Both the position numbers and the translations under genes were made by a program. A DNA stretch of 64,000 nucleotides from Octopus sinensis (taxonomy: Eukaryota): positions 372,001-436,000 of the forward strand of contig NW_021832829.1 in NCBI RefSeq assembly GCF_006345805.1. Direction: 5' to 3'. This document shows, piece after piece, positions 2,551 through 60,345 of the stretch. The first letter of the stretch is position 1. Each line of letters starts with the position of its first letter. A model generated the notes under the pieces. The model was not told where the DNA came from. It did not search any database and saw only the letters and a list, made by a program, of their open reading frames with translations.

Positions 2551-3801
2551 AAGTACTTTCTAGATATAAATCAAAAATGGATATTTACTGGAATTTATAA
2601 GAAACCGCAGGGCAATAATAGTCGAATTCTAGCCTAATTTTGTCCATATTTACTATTCTCAAAAATAAACTGATGGATCAACTATGAGGAGAAAATAAAA
2701 TCAAAAATGTTTATAGAAGACCAAACAATCTCCAGTCACAAGTTTATAAATTTGAAATAAATTAGGGTGTAATTAAAAGCTTTTATCCAACATTGACACT
2801 GGTTATGGCAAAACTGATGGATAAAGAAGGAAATAAAAATTGGAAACAATTTTTAGAGAAAGTAACTTTTTCCTATAATACGACACACCACTCGGCGATC
2901 AATGAGACCCCCTTCAAAAAGTTTAGGGGTATTTCTGGAATTAACACTGTGATTCATGAAATACCAGGTTATAATCTTATTTACAGTGCTCGTCAAAAAA
3001 AATTGCTCAGCCATTTTTTCATTCTTTTATTGACAAATTAATAAAAAATTTCATCTTACGCTTCATTTTCTATTCTAATTTTTAAGTATATTAATTTATT
3101 TATGCGATTTTATTTCAATATAAGGAAATTAAAGCATAAAAATTTAAATCTCGTGACAAAAAACATTGCTCACTTTTCTTGTTAGTGCATATGCCACGTT
3201 CTCCCAAGAAACAGTTAACTGAATTTAAAAAAGGGATGATTATTGCGTACTTTAAAGAGGGTAAATCAATCAGAGAAATCTCAAAAATACTTAATTTGCC
3301 GTATTCCACAATTTCATTTAATATTCGAAAATTTCGAGAATTTGGAACACTGCATCGGAAACCGGGCTCAGGATGTTTTCCGAAACTAAGTTCCCCCCAA
3401 ATACAATTTTTATGTAATGAAACCGAATCACATCCTACATTGTTGGCAGTGGATTTGTCCAACAAAACTAAAGAAACTTTCAATATTGATGTTTCCCCTA
3501 GGACAATTCTGAGAACTTTGAATAAAAATGGGGTATATTGTCGTGTAGCAAAAAGAAAGCCATTGCTTTCTCAAAAAATATTATTTCGAGATGGTCTGCG
3601 TCACTACGATTTTTATCGATATCTGATAGTACATGGAAATCGGTGATATTCTCAGATGAGTAAATGTTCGATGTTTTTAACAACAGAAAACATCAGCTTG
3701 TTTACAGAAAAAATAAAACGGAGTTAAAAAATGCACATTTGCTGCCGACTGTTAAGTTCGGAGTAGGGAGAGTTATGATTTGGGGCTGTATATCGTCTAG
3801 T

Positions 3802-3934
3802 GGCCGCAATGGCGCAGTGGTAACGGCCCTCTAGCAGTTCCTGCCGGCTCCGGGTTCGAATTCCGCTGTTACTGTTGCGGTCGAAACGAAGGCTTCCAAG
3901 CATTTTAGTAATGCGAAGAGGGTTGACGAGTGAC
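3802..3934 (+). mobile_element. tRNA-derived SINE-like insert (Pol III A/B boxes)
   Basis: A box TGGCGCAGTGG (about 3810) and B box GGTTCGAATTCC (about 3853). No clean cloverleaf. It interrupts the Tc1 transposase after CISSSG. Confidence 0.5.
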
Positions 3935-4179
3935 AAGACAAATATTATGAAAATTTGGCAGTCAATTCCTAAAAGTTTTTTACAAAACTTAGTAAATTCA
4001 ATGAGAAAAAGGAGTTATTCTTTATATTTAGCAAGGGGAGGACATATTAATTACTGATAATGAGATTTCCAAATTTGTGCTAATGTTTTTTGTCTTGCAA
4101 TTTTTTGTTTTTGTTTAAGTTTGTAAATAAAAAAGAAAAATTTTATTATAAAAATTAAGGTATAATAATAAAATACTAC

Positions 4180-4899
4180 TTTTTTTTTTGATGTCAGTGA
4201 CTATTTATTAAAAATATGGAAAGCTAAATTAATCAGAAATTAATCGGCCAGCAAGCCGAATGGAACAGCTGTTCCCACGCACAACGGCCAACAGGATCCT
4301 TTGGATTATGAATGTAAATTCCCTAGGATCCTTGGAGCGTAAAGAACAGAGGTGGCCAAGTTTCTTTAGATGATCAACTGTCATTGTGCCAAAGACGCAC
4401 GAAGTCTCAACAACAATTGGCCAAAACCAAAAGCCGTCTAACAAGCCCTGGTATTTTTCGGATTTTGTATGTTCAGCCCTATTAGCACGGGACCCGGGCA
4501 GAGAGGCGGATTCGTTGATGGCCGACTTAGAGAAGGAATCAACACACGTGGCATCCCAAACTAGTGGTTTACCAGCGTCGAAAGCGAACAACGTCGAGCC
4601 ATCAGGCCTTTTTCCATCACCACGGTCAAGACCGATTGACTCAAGGACAGAAGGATACCCTGCCTTTTCGAGGGCATGGAGAATGATCTTGTTAAGAGCC
4701 GAATGACGAGGTATGCGACCTGCGCTTTTCTTGCAGGAAAGGGCATGGAGCCCGTATGTGTCCATCGTTGATCCACACCGGCAGGGGTGGGGATTACAAA
4801 TCGGTAGTCCGAGACGAAGGCATATTCCAAAACGGAGGGCATCGGAGTCGAGGCAGGTATCCAAATGGGTCGTGGGAAGGCAGTTAAGCCAGGAGCTAC
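4180..4899 (-). mobile_element. CRE-clade retrotransposon 3' fragment (CCHC plus REL endonuclease) with A-tail
   Basis: ORF 4229-4864 contains CRCG...HALSC...RH, GKRPDG, WDATCVD and VRGN. A10 tail at 4180-4189. Confidence 0.92.
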
Positions 4900-7009
4900 T
4901 TAAATATGTTTACAAAAAAAATAAATTAGAATAATGCTATATAAAGACATAAACATTGGTGAGCAATTTTTTTGACGACCACTGTAATAATTTAGATAAA
5001 AATAATGAGGCATTGTTTGTCGAAGATGAACTTAATGGTAAATTTACGATGTATTTATTTTTAGAAACGAATAATAAAATTTTTAATTTCACTCCTCCAG
5101 ACATGAATTCATATTATTTTAAAAGAATGAATAAAAAGATGGGAGTACACAGGTCAAAATATGATTTTGAAATAGAGAATGAGGTATAATTAAATAATAA
5201 CAGTTTAGGTTCGAATCATAAAAGATTGTGGGACGAATCCGTCTTTGAATCTACACAGAATTAAATCCCCACATGAAGAAAAGAGAAAAGTAAGAAATAT
5301 AATGTCTAATAACAGATTAATGGTTAGTTGTCTTTCCTAACATTTAGATCGAATTACGAAATGAAACCAAGATAGTTACTATGAATAGAGTTAAAAAATG
5401 TTAAGTTTTTAGAATTTTTAGCAATTATCTTGAGTCAGTAATTAGTGCCAAACTATGTAGGTCACCCTGTCAACAATGAAGGTCGCTCTGGTCGCCAGCG
5501 TAGTTCGCGACATAATGACCTCATCATGTAAACATTGCGGTTTAGGCTTCGCTGTTCATTCATTTCTGGTCAACGACTTACAGAAAGTTTGGACTATCAA
5601 TAGGAAAAGAAAGAAATAAACTGTTATTAACAGATATTCACACATTTACACTGAAATTAGAATATACAAGTGCAATGACCGCCGATGAAAATGAAAGCAG
5701 CGACACAAGAGTGAAGACGGGGGCCCACCGACCACTCAGCTGCAGCACAACATATGGCAATACAACAACATGCACGAGGGTCAAACCAACAGACTACAAA
5801 AACATAAAAAACCAGAATAACCATCAAATGTATAAGGTTTGAACTATCCAGCTGATAAAATGACGAAATGTCCAGGCCAGCCAAAGCAGAAAGAAACGAG
5901 ATGGCACTGTGAATAAAATATACCAGCCTACATTGCAATGTGATATATATGGTGAAAAAAAGGAAACAGAAAAATAACAATTCCCGGAATTGCCAACTTC
6001 AGAATAACAGCCAGTGAAAAATTGTGGATCTGCAGAGGAACTGGAATCCAAAAACCACAAAAAACCCAAAGAAAAGACGAAAGAAGCCAAGACCGGAAGT
6101 AGTAGCACAACCAGTTGGGACCGATGATAGTGCAACACATAATTTAAGTAATACGGCATCCAATAGGTAAACAAAATCTTGTTTACGTTCACAGACACCA
6201 ACATGAACACAGTAATTAAAGCACGTGGATTGAATAGAGAAAATCGTTCCAGGATGACTTTATTTCCGCGCATGATGACATCATCCTCAACCCACAGCCA
6301 AGAAACGCCCCAAAGCAAGACTAACAGACCAAATAGCAGAACGACACTTTCTGGGGGAAGATAAGAGTAGGTCTACCAGTAAAAATGCACATTTTACAAT
6401 TATTGCGAGGGACTGAGCCAAGAAATCGGATAGTCTAATAAGCCATCGTTTTTTGCATAGTTCTATAACCAGAATGTTCACTTATTTTTAACCATTTTTG
6501 TCATACCTGCTCCGACCAGAAGCGAATAAGATAAACAGAGAACTCCCCGCAGTAGTAATGGGAGTTCTAACAGGACAAGGAGCACATTTATTAGTCCTAT
6601 ACAGACTATTGACAACTTCATTGTAAGGGATACCGAGAAGGACCAATTAATTGAAATGGAGCCTGTCTAATTAACATAATAGTTAAAAATATGCCTGAAT
6701 AACTAAATATCCAAAATATGAGCAAAAGTATAGTATCCCAGCTTGTGGAAGTTTGTTCAAGTCATGTCCGACGTAGTTGAATTCGTTTATTGTCAGGAAA
6801 TAAAAAGAATAACAGACTATTAGATTCGTCAAAAAGTAAGCGGAGACAGGGCTTTCATACGACATCAATATTATTTAAAATTTGTTTAATTAATTTTAAT
6901 AAGAATAAATTAAAAAATACTATAAATTTTGATAAATTTCAATCTAACAAAATAGGTATTCTGTCCCAATATTCTCAGCCGGTTTACTCTTGAATAATTC
7001 GTCAGTTTG

Positions 7010-7305
7010 ACTCGGTACTTGTCTACGACTCAGAATCCCTCTTTGCCACCTCATCCGTCCAAATGCGGACAGTTGATAGACTCCGATGGTCTCCACACTC
7101 TTTAGTGCCGGCTAAGCGCTGGACGTACCCCAATACAGTCCAGTTGGAACAGCGTCGTCAAATGAGATCTTAATTCCGGGGCTTTCGTTCGGTTTTAGAG
7201 CCCACTGGTCTTTATCGTGGAGACGGCAAGCGTCCCGATGAAATGACGGTCTTCCTATTCTGCGAAGAGAAGTGTCTCGTATGAGACGTAACCTGTTCTT
7301 ACAAT
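7010..7305 (+). mobile_element. Degenerate CRE REL fragment
   Basis: PHPSKCGQLIDSDGLHTL*CRLSAGR...LEPTGLYRGDGKRPDEMT...DVTCS, with stops and frameshifts. Confidence 0.8.
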
Positions 7306-7339
7306 ATTTATAGTATAGATATTATGAAAAGTGAGGAGG

Positions 7340-7999: not shown

Positions 8000-9044
8000 A
8001 TGCCTAAACAAGATAAACGACTAACTTTCGTACAAAATTTCATCTGCGGGGGAAATGCAGGAGTTGTGTGCAGAACTGTCTGCTCGCCTCTGGACGTTGT
8101 GAAAACTCTGCAACAAGTAGGGACTGCCGATGCGGCCTCCGGAATGACTCGGACGTTTATAAACCAATACAAAAACGAAGGAATAAAAGCATTTTATAAA
8201 GGCAATTTAATCGCCTGTCTCAGAGGCTTTCCTTATTACGCAATCCAATTTGCAGTTTATGAAAGATCAAAGCAAATCCTGAGTCAAAATAACTCAAAGG
8301 TCGGCTCTTTGTTGGTCTCAGTCAGTGGAGCACTCTCCGGAGTTTCTGCCGTGATTTTAACATATCCTCTTGATATGGTCAAGACAAGACTCACAGCACA
8401 GCATGCTGACCTGAGCAGGGCAAAATATAAAGGAATTTTGGACGCTTTCAAAGTCATTTCCCGAGAAGAGGGAATATTTGCTATTTACAAGGGTTTGGGG
8501 ACATCAGTAATTGGTCCTCGTTGCCTATTTATTTCCAGGAGTCATTCCTTTCACTGCGGCCACCTTTTACGCCTATGAAAATGTCAAAATGCTGTATGGA
8601 AGCACGGAGAATCGCAGCCCTGTCTATAATTTTGTTGATGGTTGTTTGGCGGGAGCGTTTGCTCAGACTGTGAGTTTCCCGTTTGATACGATCCGGAAAA
8701 AACTTCAGGTTTTTGATGTTTTTTACAGAAGGCTCAAAGTTCCTTCATCACGGGAGGAGGGACTGATGTGGAATTCAACGGAATGGTTGATGGGTTCAGA
8801 CAGACTATTCGCAGATATGGAATTCTTGGGTTGTGGAAGGGCACATTGGCCAATCTTGTCAAGGTACTGTCGATTTTTGAGTTTTTAGGTCGTGCCTTAT
8901 GCAGGAGTAATGTTTTTGACTTTTGAGGCGACGAAGCGTCTGTTTTTGTATTCGAATGGATATACTCAGAGCCCTTTCAGAGAGGATCCAATTCCACATG
9001 TTGACCAATCTCTTTCCATTTATGATAAGAGGAGGGCTTCTTAG
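8000..9044 (+). CDS. SLC25A43: Mitochondrial carrier, SLC25A43-like, 4 exons
   Basis: Three PxDxxKxR carrier repeats. Introns 8514-8538 (25 nt), 8709-8731 (23 nt; 20 nt if the upstream AG is used) and 8864-8888 (25 nt) join the ORFs. N-terminal RLTF.QNF.CGG and C-terminal NGYT.SP...VDQSL are typical of SLC25A43. Confidence 0.85.
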
Positions 9045-13979: not shown

Positions 13980-15560
13980 CAGTCCGACCTCGATTTGGAA
14001 CAGACCTCGGGGCTGGAACACCTCAGTTTTTGGAACACTTTGTAGGATCTCTGCCTAGAATAAATAATTCCTTTTAAATGAAAACCTCGATTTGGAACAA
14101 AATTTATTATTATTTATTTCTAGTCATTAAAAAAATTAATTAATTTGGATTAAAAAAAACTCCACGCCAAATCATTATGAGTCTCAGTTACGAGAAAAAG
14201 GTTGAAATTGCTCGACAACTAAAAAGTCATTCACACAGAGTACTTGCTCAAAAATATGAAACGAGCATTGGCACAATTGCTCGAATAAAAAAAAACGATT
14301 AGGCCGCAAATAACCTGTGGGAACATTATTCCAAATTTTCGGACTGAAACAAAAACTGACGATATTTTTAAAACATTGGATAGTAAAGTTCTCGACGTTT
14401 TTCAACAATTACGGCTCCAAAATGTTCCAGTTTCTGGTCCTCTTATCAAAAAAATTGGTAATTTTACTTTTTCTCACATTGTTTTAAGGTTTGAAAATTG
14501 CCGGTAAATTGAACATTACAAGCTTTAAAGCATCGAATGGTTGGTTAATGAATTTTAAAAAAAGACATGAACTCAAATTCAAAATCCTTAGCGGCGAAAA
14601 AAACTCTAATCGTGATGGAATTCAATCATTTTTAAAAGTTTTCCATGAAAAAATTGATCAATTTGGAAAAAATAATATCTTTAAAATTGATGAAACTTGT
14701 CTTTTTATAAAAAAGACCCCAAAAAAATCATTCGTACACAAAAATAAAAAAGCCTCAGGGTCTAAAATAAATAAGGAAAAAATTTCTTTGCTCTTTTGCT
14801 GCAGTTATTCAGGCCAAAAATTTGCTCCTTTAATAATCGGGAAATTTAAAAATCCCAGATGTTTCAGAAATTTTAACCCTGAGGATTATGGTGCTATGTA
14901 CTCATCTTCCAAAAATGCCTGAATGACAAGAGATATTTTTATTCAATGGTTATTCTTACTGAATGAACGAATGAAAATGGAAAAGAGAAAAATTTTAATA
15001 ATTCTTGATAACGCTTCGTGTCATGAAAATAAATTGCTCTCAAATATCGAATTGCTGTTTTTACCCAAAAATACAACTCCAATTCTTCAACCATTGGATA
15101 ATGGGATAATCAAAGCTTTTAAAGATAATTATTCGAAGGCGTTAATCGAATTTATTTGTTGTATAAATGAAGAAGATTTTTACTGCGACTTACTTAAAAA
15201 AAATTAATTTACGCCAATCATTGATAATAGTATCGAAATCGTGGCAAAATGTATCCTCCGAAATAATTACAAATTGTTGGGATAATACTTTCGGCAATGA
15301 AATATTTGTTGTTTCTGATAATCTGACGGATGATGTTATAGAACAAGTTGTAGACGAAGCAGCGATAATGAAGAAATTTTTTACAGTGGTATGCAAAATA
15401 AACAGACTATACGGTCAAAGAAGTAGTAACAAAAGTGAATGAATTGGAAGAATCAGTTCTAGACATAGCTCCAATTTTGTTAAATGATTTTTACTGTTTC
15501 AGACAAAATTTGTTCAGTAGTTTGAAGAAAAATTATGGTTATGGAAAAAGGATCTATGAC
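13980..15560 (+). mobile_element. pogo/Tigger (CENP-B HTH plus DDE_1) transposon, 3'-truncated, with a micro-intron
   Basis: TA|cagtccgacctcgatttggaaca left end; ATG at 14177. Motifs FKASNGW, IDETCLF, ILDNASCH and QPLDNGII. A 31-nt intron at 14458-14488 restores the frame (GPLIKKI|GLKIAGKL). Stops and frameshifts are present. Confidence 0.88.
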
Positions 15561-15564: not shown

Positions 15565-15755
15565 CCATTTTCAGTTCAAGTTTGACATTTTTTATACCAA
15601 TTTTGAAAATGCGACATTCAATTTTGATATTTTTTGCATCAATTTTGACAATGCAATAAGCAATATTGACATTTTTTAAATCGGTTTTGACAATGCGATA
15701 TTCAAATTTGACAATGCGGCATTCAATTTTGACACTTTTTACATCAATTTTGACT
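15565..15755. repeat. 21-bp tandem repeat arm (left)
   Basis: Units of type ttttgacaatgcaacattcaa / ttttgacattttttacatcaa. Confidence 0.9.
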
Positions 15756-17004
15756 TTTGCCGATTTGTCATTTATTTTATATTTTCTGATTCGCCGTCCC
15801 TGTACGAATTTTATGTCAAGAACAAATTCAAGAGTGTCAGAAGCTACAAGAAGAGCACTTATAAATAAGGATGAAGAGGGCGGTGATTATATACAGCTTG
15901 CTCGCGATCTTGGTGTCAAGAGGACAACAGCTATAGCCATTGTAAAAGTGGAAATCCGTATCTTTGTAAATGTGGAGGTAGAAGGGATGCTACGATAAAA
16001 CTTACGGATGATGATATGAATTTGATAATTGAAACAATTGAGAATAATCCATCGATAACATTGAAGGAATTACGAAAATTGGTAAATAATAAAGTTTGTA
16101 TTGCGACAATATATAACCGACTTGATGGGCGATTGACTACCTACAAAATGCTGCGAAGAGAACCAATTTCTAGGAATAGTCCGGAAAATATAGAAAAAAG
16201 AAAAATATTTTCATTGGATTATCAACGTAATACAAATAGAAAAATACATTTGGACGAAACAAATTTTAATCTTTTTACGTTAAAAAAATTCGGCCGATCC
16301 TTTACAGGATCACGTGCAATAGTTCCAGTAAGAGCAAGCAAAGGAGTGAATCTTAACGTTATTTTGGCAATTGATGACAATAGAACAATTGTGAGATTTG
16401 AATCACACATTGGATCTATAAAATCGAAATTTTGCAATTTTATGACGGCATTATCGGACAGTTTAGCTGGAGAGGAAATTATTATTTATATGGATAATGC
16501 TCTAATCCATAAAAAACAAGGAAATTTTGAAGGCGTGAGAGTAGAACATACAATTCGAAGATTTGATGCACCATATTCTCCGCAGCTAAATCCATGCGAA
16601 GGCTGTTTTTCGATCATCAAGGCTGAGATTAAGACATATTCATCCAATCACAATAATCCTCATAACGATGTTCATGCAGCAGGAAATGGAACGCTGACGG
16701 AATTTCGAGCACTATTATTACAAAATTCCTTAGAATATTCTATGACAAATCTAACTCGCGAGAAAATACGGAATTTTTACAGAAATGCAGAAAAAATTAT
16801 TGCACGATTGGGATTCCATTAACCTGACCTGATTAATAAATTGTCTTTATTAACTCTCATCTTGATTTAGCCGCATAGAAAAGTCCTTATGTGTGTCCGT
16901 TATAAAAATATTTGTCAAAATTGATCTAAAAAATGTCAAAATTGAATATCGCATTGTCAAAACCGATGTAAAAAATGTCAATATTGCTTATTGCATTGTC
17001 AAAA

Positions 17005-19129
17005 TTTTTTTTTTGTGAAAACTATTAACTAAAAAGAGTTCTTGTCTAGTTATTCTCTAATGCAGTTATTTTGAACTTCATAAGATGGCCTGGCAGTTCC
17101 CTCGGACGATCGCCAACGAGACTCTTTGGAAAAGATGACGAGTCTCGTTGGGATCCTTGTTTCGTCTGGCAATCTTCGACCCCAGCCGACGAAGGAAAGA
17201 AAGCGATTCTGGGCCGATGACCCCGGATGTCTCCACGGCTACTGGCGCAAAAATGTGGTTTCTAGCCAGGTACGAGTATTTTCTTGTTTTTGTGACCTCC
17301 GCATGTCTTGCCGCTGAGCCGGGCTCAGCAACTGAAGAGATCAGGTTATGCGGGGAGAATGTGTCGGAGCATGTCGCGTCCCAGATGAGGCATTTCCCGT
17401 GATCGAAGGGAAATGTTGTCATGCCATCTGGGCGCTTTCCATCCCCGCGATCCAACCCGACTGGTTCCAGCACATTAGGGAATCCCGCAGATGCCAGCGC
17501 GCGGCTCACCACATCATTAAGCCCAGAGTGTCGAGGGAAACGTCCAGCGCTACGCCGGCAGGATAGCGGGTGCAGTCCTAGGGTGTCAATCATCTGGCCG
17601 CAGCGGCATTGATGTTCACGGCAGATGTTTAATCCCAAGCGCAGAGAGACTGCGATGCGGAGGCATTCGTTATTCAGTAATGTCCCGACTGACACCATTG
17701 GGATAGCTGTCAGCCAGGCTCCCGAATACTTTTGGGACCCAGCAAGCAGGCAGCTCAGGCGGGGTTGATCAAGTTTACACTTGAGGAGGAAAAACTTGTG
17801 GTCCGAATAAATTCCGTCCCACTGCCGCTGTTTGGTCGAATCATCAGGAGCTTTGAGACCATTAGCGGACCAGCATCTGACAGCCGAAGAGAACTCAGTG
17901 TCCACGGGGGATTCAATAGCGGATTGGAGAATCTCGTGGACCAGAGAGCTGGTGGCGTGAACAGAGGAAAGAAATGCTGGCAGGGAAAGATCGGCGGCAG
18001 AGCGCACACCGATGCCACCGTGGTTAACCGGGAGGATTGCCTGCTCCCAGCCGAGGTCATCAAACGGGGCATTACAAATTGCTTCGAGGCATGCCCTGAG
18101 GGCACGGTCGAAGCTGAAGAGGCCCACGTGATTTGTAAAACAGGGGGCACTTCGGAGGGTGAACATTAGCTTGGGGATCGCGAAGCAATTCTTCAATAGA
18201 AATAAAGCCGCATGGGAATCAATTGTCGTGAGCTTACTGGACATAGATATGAGATTCGAGGTTTTTTCGGACAGAGTTTGATCCACTCCAGTGTTGAATA
18301 TGGGGGAGCCCAAAATCTTGAGATTCGATGGCGTGGTGACTTGAATGTTCGATAAAAGCAAGTTGAAGGAACGAAGAATATCGGAAAAATGGTGCGGGTC
18401 GTAACTGATGTTTATGATTTCAGATTTATTAGAATTGACTTCGAGACCAATGGCGTGCAATGAAGGGATTATGATTCTCAGGTCATCAAGAACGGATTCA
18501 GATGTAACACCTATGGTGGCGTCGTCCAAGTACCAAACGTTGAATTTGGATGATACATTCCTGGCAACGTTATCCACAGCCAGAGCGAAAAGGAGAGGGC
18601 CCAAAGGGTCACCTTGCTGTACTCCATTACTAGACGGGATTGTCTGATTACCAGCGACAAGGAGGCTGGGCTGGCCGTAGGCCAACGCGACGAGACGGGA
18701 GATTGCTGGACAGCGACGGGTAGCGGATTCGAAAAAAGTGTCATGACGCACACAGTTGAAAGCATTAGCCAAGTCTATCTTGATAAGAAGACAAGGCTTG
18801 TCTTGCCGATCTTGAGAGGCAATCACAAACTTCCTCGTGGCGTGGACTGCTGCTTCGCAGCCACCCCGAACTCCTACGCCGAGTTGTATTGGGCGTAATT
18901 CGGACCCCAGCAATTTGATGGCTTGTCTGCAAGCTACCTTCGACGCCAGACGGCGGAAGAGGCAACCCACGGCGATGGAACGGACACCGCTTTCCTTTTT
19001 CCTCAGGGCAGTGAGATTAGCGGCAAAAAATAGGTCGCGGGCATACTCGGAGATTTCTCCGTTCAAAATTCGGTTCGTAAGAGCCGTTAGGGACGATAGG
19101 AGGTGCTGACCGGCTTCACAAGTTTGGGG
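17005..19129 (-). mobile_element. CRE retrotransposon, 5'-truncated, with intact RT-CCHC-REL ORF
   Basis: 662-aa ORF 17078-19066 with LRPIQLGVG, DLANAFN, GVQQGDPLGPLLF, WYLDD, CRCG..HPLSC..RH, GKRPDG and WDATC. A10 tail at 17005-17014. Confidence 0.95.
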
Positions 19130-19157
19130 AAATATTTAGCAGGTTTGCCGCTTTCAA

Positions 19158-19363
19158 AATTGAATGTTGCATTGTCAAAATTGATCTAAAAAATGTCAAA
19201 ATTGAATATCGCATTGTCAAAACCGATGTAAAAAATGTCAATATTGATTATTGCATTGTCAAAATTGAATGTTGCATTGTCAAAATTGAATGTTGCATTG
19301 TCAAAATTGAATGTCGCATTTTCAAAATTGGTATAAAAAGTGTCAAACTTGAACTGAAAATGG
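19158..19363. repeat. 21-bp tandem repeat arm (right, inverted)
   Basis: Units attgaatgttgcattgtcaaa. Ends ...cttgaactgaaaatgg, the reverse complement of 15565 onward. Confidence 0.9.
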
Positions 19364-26760: not shown

Positions 26761-27431
26761 TTCGGTGAGCCAGGCTTATGATCTTATGCGTACGCCGCAA
26801 GCACGATTTCAACATATAATCCTTCCTCAGAAATGCCGGAACGATTTGTATATTTCTTTAACCAGAACCTCAAATATTGCTGGGGCACAGGTATTGCAGT
26901 GAATCGATTGCAAATAGATACTAGTACAGTTGCCCTTCCTACACGCCTCTATGCAGTAGTAGAATTTCGTCTCACAATTGGAAGACTTAACGTTACTTGT
27001 TTAAACTAGCATTTAAGCTTAGTCTGAGTAATCATATCATTGACTGGGTGAATTATGAGATCCCTACACCAGATTAATAAATTCTATTTTCTCGATAGTT
27101 GCTAGGATGTATTTCAAAAGAGCTAATGTGCCATCAAAATTCGTTTTGAAATTGTTTCGTTTAATTAATTATCTTGACGTTTTTTCTGTTTTCTTGGAAT
27201 AAAATCAACCTATCTACCTTTGCTGCAACGCCTGTTTTAATCGTTTTTTGTTCCACGAATTTGATTACTGAAACAAGTGGATTTCACAGCCAGCTCGAGT
27301 TTGATCTGGAGAAAGAAGATAGATCGTTTAAAGTGTCATGGGCAATGCAATACCTATTTTCTTTCTAAAAATAATCCATTTAATTGACTGTGATCATATA
27401 ATTTAAAAAAACAATAAAAATATATAATATC

Positions 27432-38571: not shown

Positions 38572-39489
38572 TCAAATCTGATTCTTTCTTGCTTTAAGTA
38601 TGTTCCAGTCATATCTTGCATCATTGTTGTAGCCTCTATTGACAAAAAGAACTCTAAAGAGTTGATGAATGTAGTAATAGTCCGGAGTTTCGTCAAATCG
38701 AAGAGAACGACAGTAGTTGAGAAACACTGCAAACTCACTCGGAAGACCCTGGCAAAGGGTTTCGACTGAAGTTGATATTTTCTTTTCAGAAATTCGTTGA
38801 TATTTCTGTTTTTTATTCTGTGCACTGAGTCCTTGCCAAGGCAGATGTCCCTTAGCCAAGTAAATGAGAATGTAGGCGAGTGACTCGAGGTCGTCCCTTC
38901 TACTTTGTTCTATCCCCATATGAGCATTGATGCTAGCATATCTAGCAGTCCCCGTTAAGTTCTTGTTGTCTCGATACGGGATATGTACGCCCACAGTATT
39001 CATGTACTTTTTGGACAGACCAAAGTCAATGATGTACACCTGACTGATGTTCCGTCCACTTCCCATCACAAAGTTGTCCGGTTTAATATCTCTGTGGATG
39101 ACTTTCTTTGAATGAATGAACTCAATTCGACTTATGAACTGTTCGCTCAGCATTAAGACTGACTTTAAACTCAGTCTCCGGGAACAGTAGTTTAGCAACT
39201 CCTCTATTGAAGGTCCAAGCAAATCCATCACCATTATGTTATACCCTTTTTGGATTAGAAATCCTCTCATTCCAGGGATTCCCAACTCTTCTCCCAAGAT
39301 CTTATACATTCGGTATTCCATGTCCAACTGTGGGTGGGCTGTGGAAATGCTCTCCAACTTGACTGCCACTTCATCCCCGCTTATTATGTTAATTGCCAAG
39401 TAGATTAGTCCAAATGACCCACTTCCTATTTTCCTTATGAGTTTGTAGCGATTTCCGACCAACATGTTCAAGTCCTCGCACAATTTCAT
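38572..39489 (-). CDS. Casein kinase I alpha-like, intronless, 305 aa
   Basis: Complete kinase domain: [45 protein letters not shown] and LPWQGL. ATG at 39489. Confidence 0.93.
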
Positions 39490-39939
39490 TTTGCTGGCTA
39501 CACAACACAACAAAAGATTCGTTATCGAACTATTATTATTTTATTGCACTTTATATTATAAAGATTAATTAACAAATACCAAAAAAGCTATGAAATAATA
39601 ATTTCTGTTATGTTTCAATAACCTTCAGGTAGCACTTATAAAAGTACAAATGTATAACATCCCCACCATCTTGTCTTACAAAACTCACGCGAAGAAAGAA
39701 TAAAATCACCTAACTAATGTTGGGTTATTTTTAGTGCTATTAATAATTTGGTTCAGGAGACTCGTACATTGTTACCATCTTCGCCATAGAACCATTAGAG
39801 GCCTCTTTCGCTGTCTTGATAAATCACATTAGAGTCCTCACTTGAATAGACGTGGGTATCCCTTCTAAGGGAATTACCTCGACAATTATCAAAAACTCAA
39901 TAACAAAAAATAATCATATACAGTAAACAATCAATGAGA

Positions 39940-49370: not shown

Positions 49371-49382
49371 GCTACTCTGATG

Positions 49383-51951
49383 CTCGTGTTGTTCAGAACA
49401 CGGGGGGCATCCTGTCGGCGTAACCGCAGCGAACCAGGAGGAAAGGTCTTGGTTAGCTTCTTCAGTCCATTCAAATTGAGAATGCCTCTTATGGCAGAAG
49501 GGAACTGCGTCAGGCTGCAGTTTGCAAAATAGTGCCTATAGTTTTTAATAATCAACTTCTACCTGTAAATGTCCAAGATTTCCAAAATTTTCTGGAATTG
49601 AATCGCCACTGTTGTTGTTCCTCAAAAGCAAGTTTTCCAGCGGAGTAAAACTCAGCACCTATCGTGAACAGAAAATAATACATATTCTGGAAATAAGTTT
49701 AACTTATTGCTAGAAATATCTAACGATTTAATTTGACAGTTCTTTTATAGTGCAGAGAACTCGGTAATTTCGTTGTTTTTCAACAATTTCAATAATTTTG
49801 GAAAGCAACCCAAAAACAACTTGGGAATGTGTTTAGTTTGTTAGAATCAAGTATAATAGTCTCCACGTTTAGCATGATTTTTATTTCTCGTGGAGTTATC
49901 CAAATTTTGTTAAATTTTGAGTGAAACGTATTTCAGACAAGGCAATATTGTTATGATTAGGGCAATTTAAGTTAAAAAAGTTAAAATATATGAAAATGTG
50001 TATTTTGGCTTAAAAGTAAAAATAAAGTATTTTTTAAATGAAATAGTTACTTATTAAAGAAAAAAATAAAGTTAAAAAAGTTAAAAAAATTTTTTTATAA
50101 AGTTAAAAATTTTAACTTTATTTAAAATAGCGCGTGGGTGTTTAGTATGCCAAGAACTGCAAAAACAATGTATTTTAAGGCAAAAAAAATTGTTATTGAA
50201 TATCCGCTGGAGTTTTTATTACGAGAGAATGGCGAGTTGCAATGTCAACTTTGCTTATGCACAGTCAGGTGTGAGAAAAAGCATTTTGTGAATTCTCACC
50301 GAGAATCGAAGAAGCACTCAAATTTATTAAGTTTTTACAAATTAATATAATTTTTAGAGAATAATTTCTATCAGCCTTGTTTGGACGAGTTACCCAATGA
50401 TGACTGGTCAATGCAAGTCACTAAAGCATTTATTCAATGCGATATACCTTGCATAAATTGACTATGCCTCCTCTAAAGAATTTATTCAAGAATACTTCTT
50501 TGCCTCTTCTTCCCAATACAAAGCAAGAATGTGCGTTAAACAATTGAAAACTGAATATATTGTATTATTTCAAGAAAAGTTTAGGTTCATGAATATATAA
50601 TTTTTTAGAAATCAACTTGTATTCGCCATAAGTGACGAGGTCACTATTCGTAGTCAAAAATTTGTTGCAGTTTTAATGGGGATACTTAAAAATCCCGATA
50701 AAACTTATTTGATTTCTTTCGTAAAAATTGATAAAACTTCTACCAAAGAAACAATTATTCAAATTGTTGACGATACGATTAAATGCGTTTTAATTGAAAG
50801 ACAAAATTTCCTTCTCCTAATAACAGATTCCGCTAAATATATGCTAGCAGGTTTTAATTTAACATATAATTATAGCTGGAAAAGTTCTTAAGCTTTTATA
50901 TCCAAGGTTATTTCACGTAACTTGTTTGCTCATCTGATGCATAATTGTTCAATGAAAATCAGGACTATTTATCCTGAAATTGATTCTCTTATTGCATCAA
51001 TTCAAGCGGCAATACAAAAAATAACAAGAGAAAACGACTATTTAATGAAATTGGAATTCCACCTCATGTAGTTTTAACTAGATGGGGTACTTGGCTAACT
51101 GCTGCATTTTATTATGCAAAAAATTTAATACATGTGATAAACATTTTCAAAACAATTCCTGATGATGGAATCATTGTTCAGGCTGCAAAAAATAGCCTAA
51201 GAGATGAATCTCTAGTAAAAAGCTTAAGTTCTATTGTTAGAAATTATTCGACAATTCCAGGTAAAACTAGTTTAATAATAGCAGAATTATTGTGCAAATT
51301 TGAAAGTTCTCACTCCTCAATAGAGTTAGCTTACAATGAGCTAAAGAATTTAAAATTTGACGACGAATCAGATATAATTGAAAAATATTTGAATGAACGA
51401 TTACAAAAAAATGATTTATGTCAAATTATAAGAATGACAAATTCATCAATTTCTCCTGAAGAATATTGTATGCTTTTAAAGTGTCAGCCTTCATCCTCTT
51501 CCATAGAACGATGCTTCTCTCAAATTAAAAACTTTATGAGGGATAACAGAAATTTTAATATTGAAAATATAGAGAATTATGTTATATGTTTGTATAATAA
51601 ATGATTCTTAAGTTAAAATTTGTTAGGTTAAAATTTTGTTTTATAGGTTAAAATTTGGTTATTTTTAGGTTAAAAAGTTAAAATTTTTAGGTTAAAAAAT
51701 CGAAGTTTTTAGGTTAAAAAAAAAATTGCCCTAGTTATGATATATGGAAATTCTTCAAGATTACACTTATCCAGTGTTATCCAAGTAACATTAAAAGACA
51801 AAAGAAGAGCTTGAAATTTCGGATCATCAGGACTGATCCTGGATAAGTCAACTTGCCGTTTCTGAGATTTTCCCCTGTGACGAAGAAAGCATTTGAGCTT
51901 ATTTCCCTGCAGTTGCTGATCTTTGTTCGATTTATCGCTGTGATTTTCCAT
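49383..51951 (-). pseudogene. Leucine-rich-repeat gene disrupted by a hAT insertion, frameshifts and a stop
   Basis: Removing the hAT plus one TSD restores LDKCNLEEFPYIIT|ILPCLKYVSLK. Further LRRs: IILDSNKLNTFP, LDISSNKLNLFP and FANCSLTQFP. Introns of 24 and 27 nt. Confidence 0.8.
49958..51733 (+). mobile_element. Complete-ended hAT transposon (C2H2/BED-like finger, DUF659-like catalytic region) with four micro-introns
   Basis: 11-bp TIR TAGGGCAATTT, perfect 8-bp TSD GTTATGAT (49950-57 / 51734-41) and gttaaaa subterminal repeats. ATG at 50147, stop at 51604. Motifs TDSAKYM, HVTC.AH..HN, TRWG.WL and SIERCFS. Confidence 0.93.
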
Positions 51952-52215: not shown

Positions 52216-52224
52216 ATTAAATAT

Positions 52225-54400: not shown

Positions 54401-55240
54401 TAGGACGTTAATCATTTGACTTGGCCTTAAGACGTGAAAACTACTATAGACAAGAGAAAATAAATATGCAAGCTCTCCACGTGTGTAAAATTAATCGACC
54501 CGTTTTTTTCACGAAAACAGTCCCCTAGAAAATATTAACTTGTTCGGTGTCATTTACATCCTTCGTTTTATCTCAAACTAAGGATCCACTTGACGTGGTC
54601 TTAAGATGTAAGACCTGTAATAGAAATTAGAAAATAAATATGCGAGATCTCCACGTATGTGGAACCAATCAACATGATTTTTTTTAGGGAAACAGTCTCA
54701 CGTGCTTTTCGACAATATTAACTTATCGACCAATTCGACATTTATTCTACCATCAAAAACTAAAGATTCGTGGTACGTCGTCTCAAGATGTGAGACACTC
54801 TATAAAAATCAGAAAATAAATAGGTCGATTGTTGGCACACACGAGTTGAACTTGAGCATTGATTTTCTGATTTTCGGAGTAGGTCTTAAATCTTAAGACG
54901 AAGAATTGTGAAAGCTTAGTTTAAGATTGTAGAAAAGTCAAACAAGTTAATATAATTGACGATTTTCCTTTAAAAAATCAGGTGGATTGGTTCCAAGCAC
55001 GTGGAGAACTTCATAATGATATCTTAATTTTCATTATACAGTGAATCCTCGCAAATTGGCCACCTCGCAAATTGGCCAATTTTTAAATTGGCCAATTTTT
55101 TCACAATTTACTAAGAAAAAAATTAATTTTCTTAGTAAATTGGCCAATTCTCAAATTGGCCACAATTTTTGAATTATTATTTTTTTTAATTAGAAAATAA
55201 ACTATTTTTTTAATCACATCTTAATAATAAAATGGTATGG

Positions 55241-55304
55241 TGTGTGTCTGTCTGTCTGTCTGTCTGTGTGTCTGTCTGTGTGTCTGTCTGTCTGTCTGTG
55301 TGTG
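55241..55304. repeat. (TGTC/TG)n microsatellite in the Helitron 5' end
   Basis: Directly visible. Confidence 0.95.
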
Positions 55305-55326
55305 CACACCAACTTCAAATTGGCAA

Positions 55327-56408
55327 TACGATGTCCTCGACTTACATGATGAGGTCCTTAAAACCTTCCCCCCAAAAAAAATTAAAAAAAATTTTTCTGC
55401 GTTTTGGTCAAAATGAACAACTACGATGTCCTCGACTTACATGATGAGGTCCTTAAAACCTTCCCCCCCAAAAAAAATTAAAAAAAAATTTTCTGCATTT
55501 TGGTTAAAATGAACAACTACGATGTCCTCGACTTACATGATGAGGTCCTTAAAACCTTCCCCCCCAAAAAAATTAAAAAAAATTTTCTGCATTTTGGTTA
55601 AAATGAACAACTACAATGTCCTCGACTTACATGATGAAGTCCTTAAAACCTTCCCCCCAAAAAAATTAAAAAAAATTTTCTGCATTTTGGTTAAAATGAA
55701 CAACTACAATGTCCTCGACTTACATGATGAAGTCCTTAAAACCTTCCCCCCCAAAAAAATTAAAAAAAAATTTTCTGCATTTTGGTTAAAATGAACAACT
55801 ACAATGTCCTCGACTTACATGATGAAGTCCTTAAAACCTTCCCCCCCAAAAAAATTAAAAAAAATTTTCTGCATTTTGGTTAAAATGAACAACTACAATG
55901 TCCTCGACTTACATGATGAAGTCCTTAAAACCTTCCCCCCAAAAAAATTAAAAAAAAATTTTCTGCATTTTGGTTAAAATGAACAACTACAATGTCCTCG
56001 ACTTACATGATGAAGTCCTTAAAACCTTCCCCCCCAAAAAAATTAAAAAAAAATTTTCTGCATTTTGGTTAAAATGAACAACTACAATGTCCTCGACTTA
56101 CATGATGAAGTCCTTAAAACCTTCCCCCCAAAAAAATTAAAAAAAAATTTTCTGCATTTTGTTAAAATGAACAACTACAATGTCCTCAACTTACATGATG
56201 AAGTCCTTAAAACCTTCCCCCCCAAAAAAAATTAAAAAAAAATTTTCTGCATTTTGGTTAAAATGAACAACTACAATGTCCTCGACTTACATGATGAAGT
56301 CCTTAAAACCTTTCCCTTAAAAAATCAAAAAATTATTTTCTGCATTTTGATTAAAATGAACAACGCGAATGTCCTCGACATTCATGATGAGGTCCATTAA
56401 AACCTTCA
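55327..56408. repeat. Minisatellite with an about 94-bp unit, 11 full copies plus 1 partial
   Basis: Unit starts at 55327, 55422, 55518, 55612, 55705, 55800, 55894, 55988, 56083, 56176, 56272 and 56365. Confidence 0.97.
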
Positions 56409-59339
56409 AGGCAAAAATCTCACGTATTAAGAATATCCTTGATGAAAACGACAGCGAGAATATTAACAATGATGAACTCCCAATTATTCGCGATAAAGAA
56501 ATTCAATTCATCCTATGTTTTTCTCTTTAAAATTAAATGCATATATCATTATTGACCATGAATCAAAATTAAAGCTATTATCATATTTGACTTTGACAGA
56601 ATGTGCAATCACAGATTGCACGACTTTGAATAGAGTGTGCAATTAACAGATTTTGAAAAACCACTTTGATAGTTGAAACCACATTAGCACAATCATTAAC
56701 ACAATTTACCACCAATTGACGCACGACCTTGAATAGAGTGTGCAATTAACAGATTTTGAAAAACACTTTGATAGTTGAAACCACATTAGCACAACCATTA
56801 ACACAATTTACCACCAATTGACAGCGCAATCAGAAGAATTTGCGTAAAAATATTAACTATTTACTTGAGTTTTTCGTAAAGATAGAATTTATTTTCGGTA
56901 TGCCTCTTTTCCTAAACTTTTTTATTATTCAAAAATAATTTTTTAAATAGATAACCGAAGGAGGAAAAACGAAGCTGAAGAAAAAACGGTCAGCTTAATA
57001 AGGTAATTAATTAAATCTTTTTTGTGTGTCGCTTTTTTGTGTGTCGCTTTCTTGCCTGCCGCATTTCCGCCTGCCGCATCTCCCCCTGCCCCATTTCCGC
57101 CAGTAAAAAACAAAAAGAGAAAAAAAAGGAAATTACAAAGGAAAAATGAAAAAATCAAATATAAAAAAAAATAAACCACAAAAAATGAAAAAAAAAGTGT
57201 GCAATGACAATAAACAAGGCCCAGGGACAGTCATTAAAGGTAGTTGGGTTATTTTTAGAGAGTGAGTGCTTTTTACATGGACAGCTGTATGTGGGATGCT
57301 CGAGGGTAGGCAGAAGAGAAAATTTATTCATATATGCCAAGGAAGGACGGACGACAAACATCGTTTATCAACAGGCGATAGAATAGGGTTACATTTAACC
57401 AGGTAGTTTTATACATCTACATAAACTTATAGTTGTTTGATGAAACAGGCCCTCCGCAGGAGCTAGGTCGCGGTGAGCGAAGCGAGCTGCCGAGCTAGTG
57501 TCTTATAAAATTTCTCGTGGACGTTATACTCGGCTCACTTTTCTTGAAAAAACACAAATTATAAACTACAAGGAAGAAAATGACAGTGTTTCGTGTCAGC
57601 TTCTGGCTGACAGATTCTCACATTTATTCCACAAGACGATCTCGAGAAAGACGATCAATAATCTACTGCTTAATAAAGACTCTATTTTACGGGATTCGAA
57701 AATCTATCAAAATTCGTATAAAGCTGCTCACAAACCAAAATTTCCTACGCTTGAAGAAAAATTGATCGAATGGATGGATACAATAGAGTCTAAAGGTATT
57801 AATTGAAAACCATTTTTAGGTGGTTTTTTGAATGATTCCTTAATATCGTGTAAGGCTGCGCATTTTGCCGAAGAGCTACAACTTAGTAACTTTAAAAATT
57901 ATAATGGATTTCTGGCAAAATTCAAAAAGAGACACGGTTTTAGAATGCTAAAATTACATGGAGAGATGCGAACAGATAAAGTAGTTGACATTAATTCTTT
58001 TCGTGAAGAATTTAAAGAAATTTCTAAATCGTATAAGCCTGATCTAATTTATAATTTGGATGAAACTGCATTATACTACAAGCTTATTCCATCGAAAAGC
58101 GTATGCAGAAACCGATTCCAAGGATACAAAATTTTAAAGACCGTGTGTCTATTATGCTTTGTTCAAACATGACCGGAAGTCATAAATTGAAACCTGTGAT
58201 GATTGGAAAACCAAAAATGCCTAGATGTTTTAAAAATTTTGACTATGGATGTCTTGTCTCATATTATAGCTCACAGAAAGCTTGGATGACTGGATCTATT
58301 TTTATTGATTGGATTATTAGCTTTGATCTCCAGCTTAAAATTAAAAAGAAGAAAATTTTATTGCTAATAGACCACTGTCCTGCACATTCTATTCCTCAAA
58401 ACTTGGATTGTATTAAGATTTTATTTTTTCCTAAAAATTCTACTGGATTACTACAACCAATGGATATTGGAATTATAAAAACCTTCAAGACTCATTTCAT
58501 GAGAAGAAAGCTACAGTACTTAACTGATTTGCTGGAGACTGAAATATTTCTGTATACAATTCATACAAAAAATTGACATTAAAAGATGCAATTTTGTTTG
58601 TTAATATGGCTTGGGATGACGTATCTACTGAAACTATTCAAAATTGTTTTAAGATTTTAAATGAATCTAATCACGAAAATACATTAATTGAACATTATGA
58701 GACTGAAATTGAAAGAACTGACATTTTCGATCCTCTAATGAGCGAAGATTTTCTAAATATCGAAAACACAGAAGATCAAGATATAAACGAAAATTGTTTA
58801 CAAGAGGATCAAGAGTCTGAAATTAGCGACGAAGAGACAAAAATCATATATCCACTCGATAGAAAAGATATTGCAAAGACATTAACTAGAATAGAAAGGC
58901 AACTTTACTGTAATGCAGAAAATGAGAATGATGTTTCGCTGATTACTGCAATAAGAAAATACAAAGAAAATGTAAAAAGAGCAAATAAAAAGGAATTAGG
59001 GATTGAATTTTATTTTATAAAATTTAAACGTGTTTATTTTATTTTTTAAATATTGATTTTTTTCAAATTGGCCATTTTCTCAAATTGGCCATAAAATCTC
59101 TATGTACCAAAAATGGCCAATTTGCGAGGATTCACTGTATGTCTCACATTTTAAGAAGACGTATTGTGAAGCTTTAGTCTGAAATAATAGGAAGGATGCC
59201 GAGAAGAAAGAACAAATTAATATAGCGTTTAACTCATGACGTCGAAGAGAGTCAGTTGAATGTAGTACGAGTACAGTAGAGGCATCTAACGTGTAGATCT
59301 CCTCCCACGTAGGGACCGATCGCCATTGGTTATTATATT

Positions 59340-59660
59340 ACGCAATATATTATTATAGGCACTTTTGCGATGCCATGGATCATGACAAAGCTTGTGCAGC
59401 ACAGGAAACAATAAGAGTAATTAGTCTATTCCATTTCCCGCGATCTTGGGCAACGTCCCGTAGTGCATCGAGATCGTCCCCGGCTTTCAATTCTTTACGA
59501 GCCCTCTTTAGGTCTCTATCCAGCGTACCTGGGAGAGTATTTCTTGGTCGCCCACAGAAACGATGACCCCCAGCTTCGAAATAGTCTGTCGCGAGCGCTG
59601 AGAGCGATGACAGGTGATTTGACAGCTGCCAGCATCTGTCATGATAAATATATAACAAAC
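59340..59660 (-). mobile_element. RTE-like LINE 3' end
   Basis: GRPRNTL...LDRDL...L..VAQDRGKW, followed by a tat/taa-rich tail. Confidence 0.75.
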
Positions 59661-59689
59661 TTCAAAAAAGAAATTAAAGATAGCTAAGT

Positions 59690-59865
59690 AAATTAAAGGC
59701 CTCACGAGACACCCGGCCAGCCTCGCAAATGGCGAAGCCGTTCCCTCGGATCACAGCAATCGACAGACGTTCCAGGAGCCAAGAAAACTCTCTTGGATCG
59801 TGACTAGTCCTTGAAATCCGTCGACCGAGCGAGCGAAGGAAGCGGAGTGTCTTGGGGCCGAAAAA
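59690..59865 (-). mobile_element. Extremely 5'-truncated CRE 3' tip
   Basis: Encodes ...ERLSIAVIRGN.... Near-identical to 60495-60597. Confidence 0.75.
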
Positions 59866-59944
59866 TTATAAATATACATAATTATCATAAATTGATTCAC
59901 TTTATTAAAAAAATTATAAATTAAGTTTCGAAATAATTTGGGCA

Positions 59945-60345
59945 ATCAGGTGTTAAGGAAAATCCAAAACGTTTTGATATGGAAGAATTGGAAGTTGGAG
60001 AAAATCCAGACATTTATAATAAAGGTTTTTTATTGTTATTTATTAGTAAAAATGATGAGTACAATTTAATTTTGAGAGGATGAATTTGGAGTCTTCATAT
60101 TATAGAAGAATGAATAGGAAAATGGGAGTCCATCGATCAAAATATGAGTTAGATGTTGGACATATTGTATTCTATTTTTAATTACTTAAAGGTTCGTGTA
60201 TAAAAAGATTATGGGACGAATCCTTCTCTTCGATTAAAAAAATTTGAACATCCGTATGGGGATCCAGTAACTATTGTCGAGAAATTGTCTAACAATTTTG
60301 TCAAAGTGCTAGGTCTATTAAGAAAGTTGATTCAAGGCGACTAAA
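59945..60345 (+). mobile_element. Second, diverged Ginger-like integrase C-terminal fragment
   Basis: YYRRMNRKMGVHRSKYELDVGHI|VRV..DYGTNP. The 25-nt intron 60167-60191 is at the same position as 5184-5208. Confidence 0.65.

Follow-up and report, generated by a model that had tools for sequence, protein, structure and literature searches.

Putative spliceosomal micro-introns in hAT, pogo and Ginger-like DNA transposons of a probable dicyemid genome

Do transposons that live among host genes with extremely short introns carry such introns in their own genes, and, if so, were these inherited or gained? The question is raised by a 64-kb stretch of DNA filed under Octopus sinensis (assembly GCF_006345805.1, contig NW_021832829.1, positions 372,001 to 436,000; hereafter, the window), in which remains of transposons are interspersed with a small number of host genes; it has ~38% GC and the standard genetic code. 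A sequence-only reading of the window had proposed that five DNA transposons, one hAT, two pogo and two Ginger-like, contain host-size GT-AG segments whose removal restores their reading frames, and this was borne out by colinearity with homologs. On the evidence of genomic sequence and alignment, the probability that these segments are genuine spliceosomal GT-AG introns is estimated at about three in four.

Nine well-supported segments and one tentative segment were recognized: four in hAT, one each in pogo-1 and pogo-2, two or three in Ginger-like element A and one in Ginger-like element B (Table 1). All ten begin with GT and end with AG. Their lengths are 21-31 nucleotides (nt), so that the micro-size class originally proposed stands, but the proposed range of 24-31 nt does not, as the fourth hAT intron has 21 nt; moreover, hAT has four introns, not one. 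Each of the nine insertions defined by homologs is bounded by GT...AG, as compared to a chance of ~0.003 per random start-end pair, and the GC content of the introns (0.11-0.23) is lower than that of their flanks (0.30-0.38). In hAT, pogo-1, pogo-2 and the Ginger-like elements, removal restores both the frame and gapless colinearity with uninterrupted homologs. Not all frame breaks are introns, as window copies also carry 1-nt indels and stop codons.

The pogo-2 family includes an intact copy. Copies were compared on five contigs of the O. sinensis assembly GCA_006345805.1, designated L001 (VCDQ01010770.1), L002 (VCDQ01010602.1), L006 (VCDQ01000373.1), L007 (VCDQ01011782.1) and L008 (VCDQ01001336.1). 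The L001 copy, which is intact and has perfect terminal inverted repeats (TIRs) and TA duplications, encodes 509 amino acids (aa) when 25 nt are removed, versus a stop after 101 aa when unspliced; the pogo-2 open reading frames (ORFs) of L006 and L008 encode 502 and 473 aa. Perfect 27-nt TIRs with flanking TA are found in the copies of the window, L001, L006 and L008, and Pfam identifies DDE_1 (PF03184, 4e-34) along with a CENP-B/Tc5-type helix-turn-helix (HTH) domain (PF03221), as is usual for pogo/Tigger elements of the Tc1-mariner superfamily. The spliced junction reads ...IESKG/GFLNDSLIS (here and below, a slash marks the junction), and the spliced protein is gapless against intronless relatives, including a continuous 510-aa ORF of Dictyocoela muelleri (P0003). 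At the same site, the intron measures 25 nt in L001, L006 and L008, with one extra A relative to the window, and a sister family with ~71% nucleotide identity to pogo-2 (L002, 25 nt; L007, 26 nt) also has a GT-AG intron there, diverged in sequence and flanked by well-conserved exons. The intron is thus present in six of six copies of the clade (24, 25, 25 and 25 nt in pogo-2; 25 and 26 nt in its sister), and exon frame is unaffected by its length. Because all four pogo-2 copies and both sister copies carry it, the intron predates ~29% nucleotide divergence. Near-identical pogo-2 copies at different sites apparently reflect recent mobility of an intron-bearing master. The window copy itself is dead, owing to a 2.28-kb insertion at its ATG (55220-57498) and two 1-nt deletions; these deletions, near 58125 and 58545, were considered as introns and rejected, being absent from L001 and L002. 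The insertion contains an 11-copy tandem array of 94 bp (55327-56407) and a 102-bp doublet (56618-56822), both of which also occur on L008, and at its 3' end encodes the C-terminus of a Pif1/Helitron-like helicase (57189-57383, '...TINKAQGQSL...'), a family assignment made by eye.

In hAT, which is flanked by an exact 8-bp target duplication (GTTATGAT, 49950-49957 and 51734-51741), the conceptual protein aligns end to end once four GT-AG segments (27, 24, 25 and 21 nt) are removed and four frameshifts are bridged. Ten full-length relatives of 453-482 aa, with 36-40% identity, served for comparison. Pfam returned only DUF659, at 34.6 bits versus a cutoff of 34.7, and the C-terminal dimerization domain (PF05699) had no match in the conceptual protein; toward the C-terminus, it shares the conserved motif S-x-ER-x-FS with its homologs. 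Intron 1 lies directly 3' of an N-terminal CxxC...HxxxxH zinc-finger-like motif. Junctions 2 (...FQEKFR/NQLVFAISDE) and 3 (...YMLA/AGKVLKLLYPRLFHVTC) lie in a strongly conserved and a near-invariant block of the homologs, respectively, and junction 4 (...STIP/AELLCKFES) is colinear after removal of an insertion unique to the window sequence. Frame breaks near 50445, 50530, 50915 and 51020 were rejected as introns and attributed to indels. One relative, P0132, has an uninterrupted ORF; on its contig, which is of marine eukaryotic origin and 22 kb long, the adjoining aldehyde dehydrogenase gene is split into pieces.

The second pogo element, pogo-1, is decayed: TGA replaces a conserved W at 14920, and there are two frameshifts caused by indels in A-runs. 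Neither this TGA nor the breaks near 14297 and 15204 were accepted as introns, all three being point mutations or indels. Its 5' end, CAGTCCGACC..., directly follows TA and resembles a TIR-like end in L002; a 3' end of pogo-1 was looked for and not found. Removal of the pogo-1 intron switches the frame and joins ...VSGPLIKKI/GLKIAGKLNITSFKASNGWL, yielding a gapless alignment with nine intronless pogo homologs. The site is 11 codons downstream of that in pogo-2, and each element reads straight through the site of the other, while a third, decayed pogo lineage on L008 (pogo-3) reads through both. Thus, one genome houses a pogo lineage for each of three states: an intron at one site, at another 11 codons away, or at neither.

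Relatives of the Ginger-like elements were found only by an exhaustive HMMER search; a word-indexed protein search with the fragments yielded no match, nor did Pfam when applied to the window Ginger-like fragments or to single ORFs of the hAT pieces. The best homologs are stand-alone integrases of 401-600 aa, most of them ~400-460 aa, with the rve domain in all of those scanned, Integrase_H2C2 in three of eight and reverse transcriptase (RT) in none. In a tblastn comparison, P0142-P0157 aligned with three pieces of the window, at 2658-2963, 5064-5328 and 60083-60311. Element A consists of the first and second of these, which are split by a nested Tc1-like element and a fragment of a long interspersed nuclear element (LINE; 4259-4900, minus strand); the first piece is decayed and has one extra stop codon. 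Its intron coincides with the same 8-codon gap in all nine homologs that span the site, opposite VYKFEIN(stop), and is flanked by ...PNNLQSQ / GVIKSF..., versus HPQSQ/GQVERFNQT in homologs, with a GC content of 0.12 as compared to 0.32 in its flanks. Removal of the intron in the second piece gives ...YDFEIENE/VRIIKDCGTNPS, colinear with ...YDFCIGKKVRVYKDFGTNPS of P0142 (ENE/VRIIKD versus GKKVRVYKD), and in element B the corresponding removal gives ...VGHI/VRV(stop)KDYGTNPS, versus ...IGKKVRVYKDFGTNPS of P0142. These two introns occupy the same codon position in similar flanking exons and have diverged in sequence. A 22-nt GT-AG segment at ~60026-60047 in element B was rejected, as a stop remains after its removal. 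Spacing in the GPY/F region is as in the motif, although the motif itself is degenerate (window ...KKFEHPYGDPVTIV, P0142 ...KFESKYKDIAII). The nearest outgroup, P0142 of Dictyocoela roeselum, is a continuous ORF. The Ginger-like copy on L002 (6378-7230) encodes the N-terminal half of the integrase; it has 24 nt at the first intron site of element A (7115-7138), where the 5' GT is mutated to CT in this decayed copy, and two more 24-nt GT-AG inserts upstream (6752-6775 and 6950-6973). This copy is then cut by a terminus of the pogo-1 type (TACAGTCCGACC...). Both window elements are internal fragments without element ends. Element B is flanked by LINE 3'-end fragments (59663-59796 and 60471-60597, minus strand, '...ERLSIAVIRGNG...'), which are direct repeats with 92% identity, ~0.8 kb apart.

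Table 1. Elements, introns and host genes of the window, with positions counted from its first nucleotide.
Feature	Position	Strand	Remarks
pogo-2, including flanking TA	55037-59139	+	inverted repeats of 27 nt without mismatch (55036-55062 and 59114-59140); identified with Pfam
pogo-2 micro-intron GTATTAATTGAAAACCATTTTTAG	57796-57819 (24 nt)	+	GT-AG, phase 1, TGA inside
hAT	49958-51733	+	TIRs TAGGGCAATTT / AAATTGCCCTA; coding sequence 50147-51604
hAT intron 1	50331-50357 (27 nt)	+	GT-AG, in frame, TAA inside
hAT intron 2	50585-50608 (24 nt)	+	GT-AG, in frame, TAA; gapless against ten homologs
hAT intron 3	50851-50875 (25 nt)	+	GT-AG; gapless, strongly conserved block
hAT intron 4	51261-51281 (21 nt)	+	GT-AG, in frame, no stop; absent from 10/10 homologs
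pogo-1	13980-15439	+	Pfam DDE_1 (PF03184) and HTH_Tnp_Tc5 (PF03221); coding sequence starts at 14177
pogo-1 micro-intron GTAATTTTACTTTTTCTCACATTGTTTTAAG	14458-14488 (31 nt)	+	GT-AG, phase 1
Ginger-like A, piece 1	2658-2963	+	C-terminal half of integrase core, homolog residues ~208-301
Ginger-like A intron GTTTATAAATTTGAAATAAATTAG	2742-2765 (24 nt)	+	GT-AG, in frame, stop inside; catalytic-E region
Ginger-like A tentative segment	5038-5064 (27 nt)	+	GT-AG, in frame, no stop; high-scoring segment pair (HSP) to P0154 starts at putative 3' splice site
Ginger-like A, piece 2	5065-5328	+	C-terminal SH3/GPY-F-like region; tblastn with P0142, P0144, P0147, P0150, P0154
Ginger-like A intron GTATAATTAAATAATAACAGTTTAG	5184-5208 (25 nt)	+	GT-AG; HSPs offset +25 nt beyond homolog gap
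Ginger-like B	60083-60341	+	C-terminal integrase fragment, one TAA for Y, between two LINE 3'-end fragments; tblastn
Ginger-like B intron	60167-60191 (25 nt)	+	GT-AG; HSP offset +25 nt
Tc1-like copy 1	3140-3830	+	nested in Ginger-like A; truncated; Pfam HTH_Tnp_Tc3_2, HTH_SB
Tc1-like copy 2	15813-16819	+	Pfam DDE_3; no convincing intron
Mitochondrial carrier	8000-9000	+	host comparator gene
Carrier-gene introns	8514-8538 (25 nt), 8709-8728 (20 nt), 8864-8888 (25 nt)	+	splicing against solved ADP/ATP carriers
Casein-kinase-like (CK1) ORF	38575-39540	minus	host gene

Host genes of the window provide the comparison for intron size. The spliced carrier protein is colinear with solved ADP/ATP carriers at all three of its junctions, and septin and TPR genes add further likely host junctions of 22-27 nt (22- and 27-nt candidates); from the carrier, septin and TPR junctions, a host intron size of 20-27 nt was derived. 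The window also contains MOCS3-like, CDK-like and septin-like host genes. A carrier intron first placed by eye at 8507-8538 (32 nt) was rejected, as the ADP/ATP-carrier alignment sets it at 8514-8538 (25 nt). Because of this error, and because several alternatives exist per host junction, GT-AG ends and an open frame are by themselves weak evidence for an intron.

The two Tc1-like elements and the retroelements were said by the sequence-only reading to lack micro-introns, and only plain frameshifts and stops were found in them. Frame inspection of Tc1 copy 1 revealed no micro-intron; its frame is broken only by a shift of 1 nt within a run of A and by a premature TAA. Tc1 copy 2 has one frame break, near 15945-15960, which is common to an 85%-identical copy on L001; a 20-nt GT-AG segment there (15958-15977) was rejected, since its removal would delete a conserved basic motif. 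A 20-nt GT...AG stretch is nevertheless conserved (GTATCTTTGTAAATGTGGAG in the window, GTATGTTTGTAAACGTGGAG in L001) at this break, which separates the first HTH from the remaining transposase (15945-15977 in the window; ~1660-1700, minus strand, in L001). The shared break could be a frameshift passed on by a master copy that was already dead, or else a very small intron whose excision takes away a motif that is conserved as a rule. For the retroelements, comparison of copies within the window offered too few paralogous pairs, and an intact 685-aa LINE ORF was instead compared with the window by tblastn; at none of the seven frame switches in other LINE fragments did the gap in the window exceed that in the query, and none had an extra 20-31 nt.

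Several points weigh against reading the segments as introns of the host type. Because the window copies are all pseudogenes, hAT, pogo-1 and the Ginger-like elements rest on homologs that are 31-64% identical. The first hAT intron lies in a variable region, has weaker homolog support and is the least certain of the four, and the tentative segment of Ginger-like A lies in a variable, unalignable linker, where homologs are not decisive. Spliced transcripts of any of the families were absent among protein-search matches, and a junction or gapped pattern for pogo-2 had no match in metagenome contigs. The identity of the host, discussed below, is circumstantial. Finally, the statement that the closest relatives are intronless is biased, since gene calling on metagenome contigs is unable to bridge introns. 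An opposing view takes the segments for ordinary insertions, or for fortuitous GT...AG stretches, within pseudogenes that are decaying; it could appeal to the many GT...AG pairs that keep a frame open by chance, with several alternatives at each host junction, to the 7-nt error in the first host intron placed by eye and to the frequency of plain indels in window copies, but is very improbable in view of the GT...AG bounds of nine of nine insertions (versus ~0.003 per pair), the need for removal in the intact L001 copy, the retention of the site while sequence and length drift and the lack of comparable inserts at the seven LINE frame switches. Coding indels, named by the sequence-only reading as what would overturn its proposal, are likewise a very improbable explanation, given the nine of nine bounds and L001.

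The window probably represents dicyemid DNA, from Dicyema japonicum or a close relative. Among 51 metazoan genomes compared, introns of <30 nt were found only in dicyemids and myxobolids (PMC13644364). In D. japonicum, which was collected from its host O. sinensis, the GC content is 36.7%, repeats make up 49% of the genome and the number of introns per gene is 6.2 (PMC6736024). DNA transposons go undiscussed in that genome paper, in which 'transpos' has no occurrence (PMC6736024). With 99.1-99.7% identity, copies on unplaced contigs of GCA_006345805.1, the O. sinensis assembly, are the closest relatives of the window pogo-2. At least 13 RefSeq proteins annotated as 'tigger transposable element-derived protein 6-like [Octopus sinensis]' fall in the two pogo-2 families, encoded on contigs of 13 kb to 1.29 Mb. 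Because these copies have the micro-intron and are nearly identical to the window, this suggests that the octopus assembly and its annotation contain dicyemid parasite DNA in sizeable quantity. On these contigs, Gnomon models mis-splice the pogo-2 transposase; for instance, the RefSeq model P0001 begins only after the real 25-nt intron and leaves out 33 conserved residues whose codons are uninterrupted in the DNA.

The mechanism that the preferred reading entails is ordinary, namely host splicing of DNA-transposon genes and an RNA-step purge in retroelements. It is well established that copying through RNA purges introns within the transcribed unit of a retroelement. Cut-and-paste elements with introns would inhabit a genome in which host introns, too, measure 20-30 nt, and their transposase would be made only after the host spliceosome had removed the introns; that splicing takes place is something we infer, as are the identity of the host and the time and place of gain. 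Because such elements move as DNA, the introns would persist in every copy, and because their transposase would need host splicing, the introns would have the host size, GT-AG ends and AT-richness.

Intron-bearing transposons are familiar from other systems: Drosophila pogo (one short intron), maize Ac and medaka Tol2 (hAT elements with several) and the P element all have introns. Tc1-like TLEWI elements of bivalves carry them as well (bioRxiv 10.1101/656579), and Ginger1 elements have 1-4 canonical GT-AG introns in their coding sequence (Bao, Kapitonov and Jurka 2010, PMC2836005) and are recognized as multi-exon transposons (PMC12863088). Accordingly, the premise of the sequence-only reading that cut-and-paste transposases are intron-poor is weak for these superfamilies. 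As in Drosophila pogo, Ac, Tol2, P and TLEWI, the transposase mRNA of the window elements would need host splicing, and the pogo and hAT superfamilies are represented in both sets. However, the introns of those elements have the sizes usual in their hosts, from tens to hundreds of nt, whereas those described here are 21-31 nt. Furthermore, TLEWI elements lack TIRs and look domesticated, unlike pogo-2 with its perfect TIRs, TA duplications and near-identical copies. The Ginger-like elements resemble Ginger1 in being stand-alone integrases of the Gypsy type (H2C2 and rve, no RT), a likeness read from the homologs of the window fragments, and differ in having introns of 24-25 nt at no fewer than five sites, that is, at least five over the window and L002 copies. 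TIRs of 40-270 bp with TGTNR termini, a 4-bp CCGG/CCGT duplication and C-terminal OTU/Ulp1 domains are further features of Ginger1, and three intron positions are conserved among Ginger1, Gin-1 and Gin-2 (PMC2836005); the present comparison covers internal fragments. In size class (medians of 22-27 nt), in the reduced GTa...AG motif and in A residues 5' of AG, the introns match those of dicyemid and myxobolid myxozoan host genes (PMC6736024; PMC13644364); those reports concern host genes, and the present introns lie in transposon genes. Introners and introner-like elements also link transposons with introns (PMC9860276; PMC12130899). In that case, a transposon becomes an intron, which is the opposite of the present situation, where introns unrelated to each other and unrepeated in the window lie inside transposon genes.

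When and how the introns arose is a separate matter. From the copies compared, they appear to be fixed, family-old characters rather than fresh insertions: among all copies examined, none was found to lack an intron at a covered site, and Ginger-like introns are common to the diverged copies A, B and L002. Such comparison of sites among copies was confined to the pogo-2 clade and the Ginger-like elements, as hAT and pogo-1 are represented by single copies. The pogo and hAT introns were probably acquired along the transposon lineage after its split from intronless relatives, while in the Ginger-like elements the multi-exon state is already the norm of the superfamily. Gains within transposon lineages are plausible because the closest non-host homologs were found intronless and because the three pogo lineages differ in site. 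This comparison of spliced proteins with their closest non-host homologs, which had been suggested along with the original proposal, showed the intron positions to be absent there, with the proviso that retrieval was biased to uninterrupted ORFs. Two sources for such introns were considered and rejected. Tandem duplication of an AGGT-containing exon segment was rejected because identity between introns and flanks was at shuffle level (p = 0.29-0.97) in a test of nine transposon introns and four host introns. An introner-like family was rejected because, within the 64 kb, the nine intron sequences did not recur at five or fewer mismatches, bar one 5-mismatch match for the pogo-2 intron, and pairwise similarity among introns did not exceed about two-thirds ungapped identity.

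An appreciable, though less than even, chance attaches to the alternative that the introns were inherited at ordinary size from ancestors in other hosts and shrank to ~25 nt in the dicyemid lineage, through the same deletion bias or selection that miniaturized host introns. This would apply especially to Ginger, and it agrees with introns that predate family splits within the genome and whose sizes track the host range. The search, which was biased against such a result, yielded no homolog in which any of these sites holds an intron, and the difference in intron site among pogo lineages also speaks against this alternative. Speculative, with the odds clearly against it, is a specific form of the gain that the preferred reading allows in pogo and hAT, in which intronless elements of both types entered the dicyemid lineage and then gained introns born at micro size (21-31 nt). 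If this were true, the four introns within 1.4 kb of hAT would mean that its intron density had risen to a level like that of the host; new introns would also arise in a lineage believed only to shrink and conserve ancestral ones; and transposon families with datable copy divergence would provide a clock for intron gain.

The sequence-only reading had gone further, proposing an active process of de novo micro-intron gain, past or present, that put introns of ~25 nt into resident transposons, so that copies could serve as dated gains. Uninterrupted closest non-host homologs (P0132 for hAT, P0003 for pogo and P0142 for the integrase), four hAT introns versus none in ten relatives, the differences in intron site or presence among pogo-1, pogo-2 and pogo-3 and an intron density of the hAT and Ginger-like genes that approaches the 6.2 per gene of the host (PMC6736024) are all in its favor. 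Nevertheless, it is unlikely. Presence/absence polymorphism was not observed, since six of six pogo-2-clade copies and all Ginger-like copies that cover a site carry the intron; the pogo introns are older than the ~29% divergence of sister families; and the introns are dissimilar to their flanking exons and, apart from the single pogo-2 match, unrepeated in the window. In addition, Ginger1 is ancestrally multi-exon, the outgroups include intron-poor microsporidia and metagenome ORF calls biased to intronless genes, and de novo gains may date from earlier hosts. Of the original idea, then, gain inside transposon lineages survives as plausible, specifically as lineage-specific gains in pogo and hAT, but an active or recent genome-wide process is without support because every copy examined has its intron.

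It has also to be considered whether the first introns, whatever their origin, act as a dosage or tissue switch, in which retention would yield a short DNA-binding protein that competes with the transposase. The P element of Drosophila, with retention of its third intron, provides an analogue. Unspliced, the intact pogo-2 stops after 101 aa, just past the first HTH region, and the TAA in hAT intron 1 directly follows the zinc-finger-like motif. Very short introns of Microsporidia are spliced inefficiently, with a median of ~25% (cited in PMC13644364). This is nonetheless quite unlikely, being a structural argument only, and neither introns 2-4 of hAT nor the Ginger-like introns are placed in this manner.

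For two unrelated families, the closest relatives outside the dicyemids are found in Dictyocoela, a genus of microsporidia that live in amphipods (P0003 on L004 and P0142 on L005). Identity is 47% between pogo-2 and its D. muelleri match, and 41% overall, reaching 64% locally, between the Ginger-like elements and D. roeselum. These matches could reflect horizontal transposon transfer among marine parasites and hosts, or host DNA in those assemblies.

Other repeats were noted in the window. Two 1.1-kb direct repeats (27153-28252 and 30359-31456), which are 99.3% identical and 2.1 kb apart, enclose a LINE-like RT fragment (29758-30260) and may have arisen by segmental duplication or be long terminal repeats. 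Short tandem 21/42-bp 'TTGACA...' arrays (15575-15734 and 19154-19346), in opposite orientation, flank a block composed of Tc1 copy 2 and LINE sequence; such arrays, which are found again at 16912-17006, may mark the termini of a further element.

Taken as introns, the segments described here would extend the extreme intron regime of this genome from host genes to selfish DNA. Because a pogo family that was apparently mobile until recently needs the removal of one such 25-nt segment, introns of this length must be spliced well enough to sustain transposition. Intron-bearing elements with intronless relatives, together with the three pogo lineages, offer concrete sites at which gain may be tested against inheritance. 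In practical terms, gene finders and repeat annotators that ignore introns of <30 nt will miscall these transposases.

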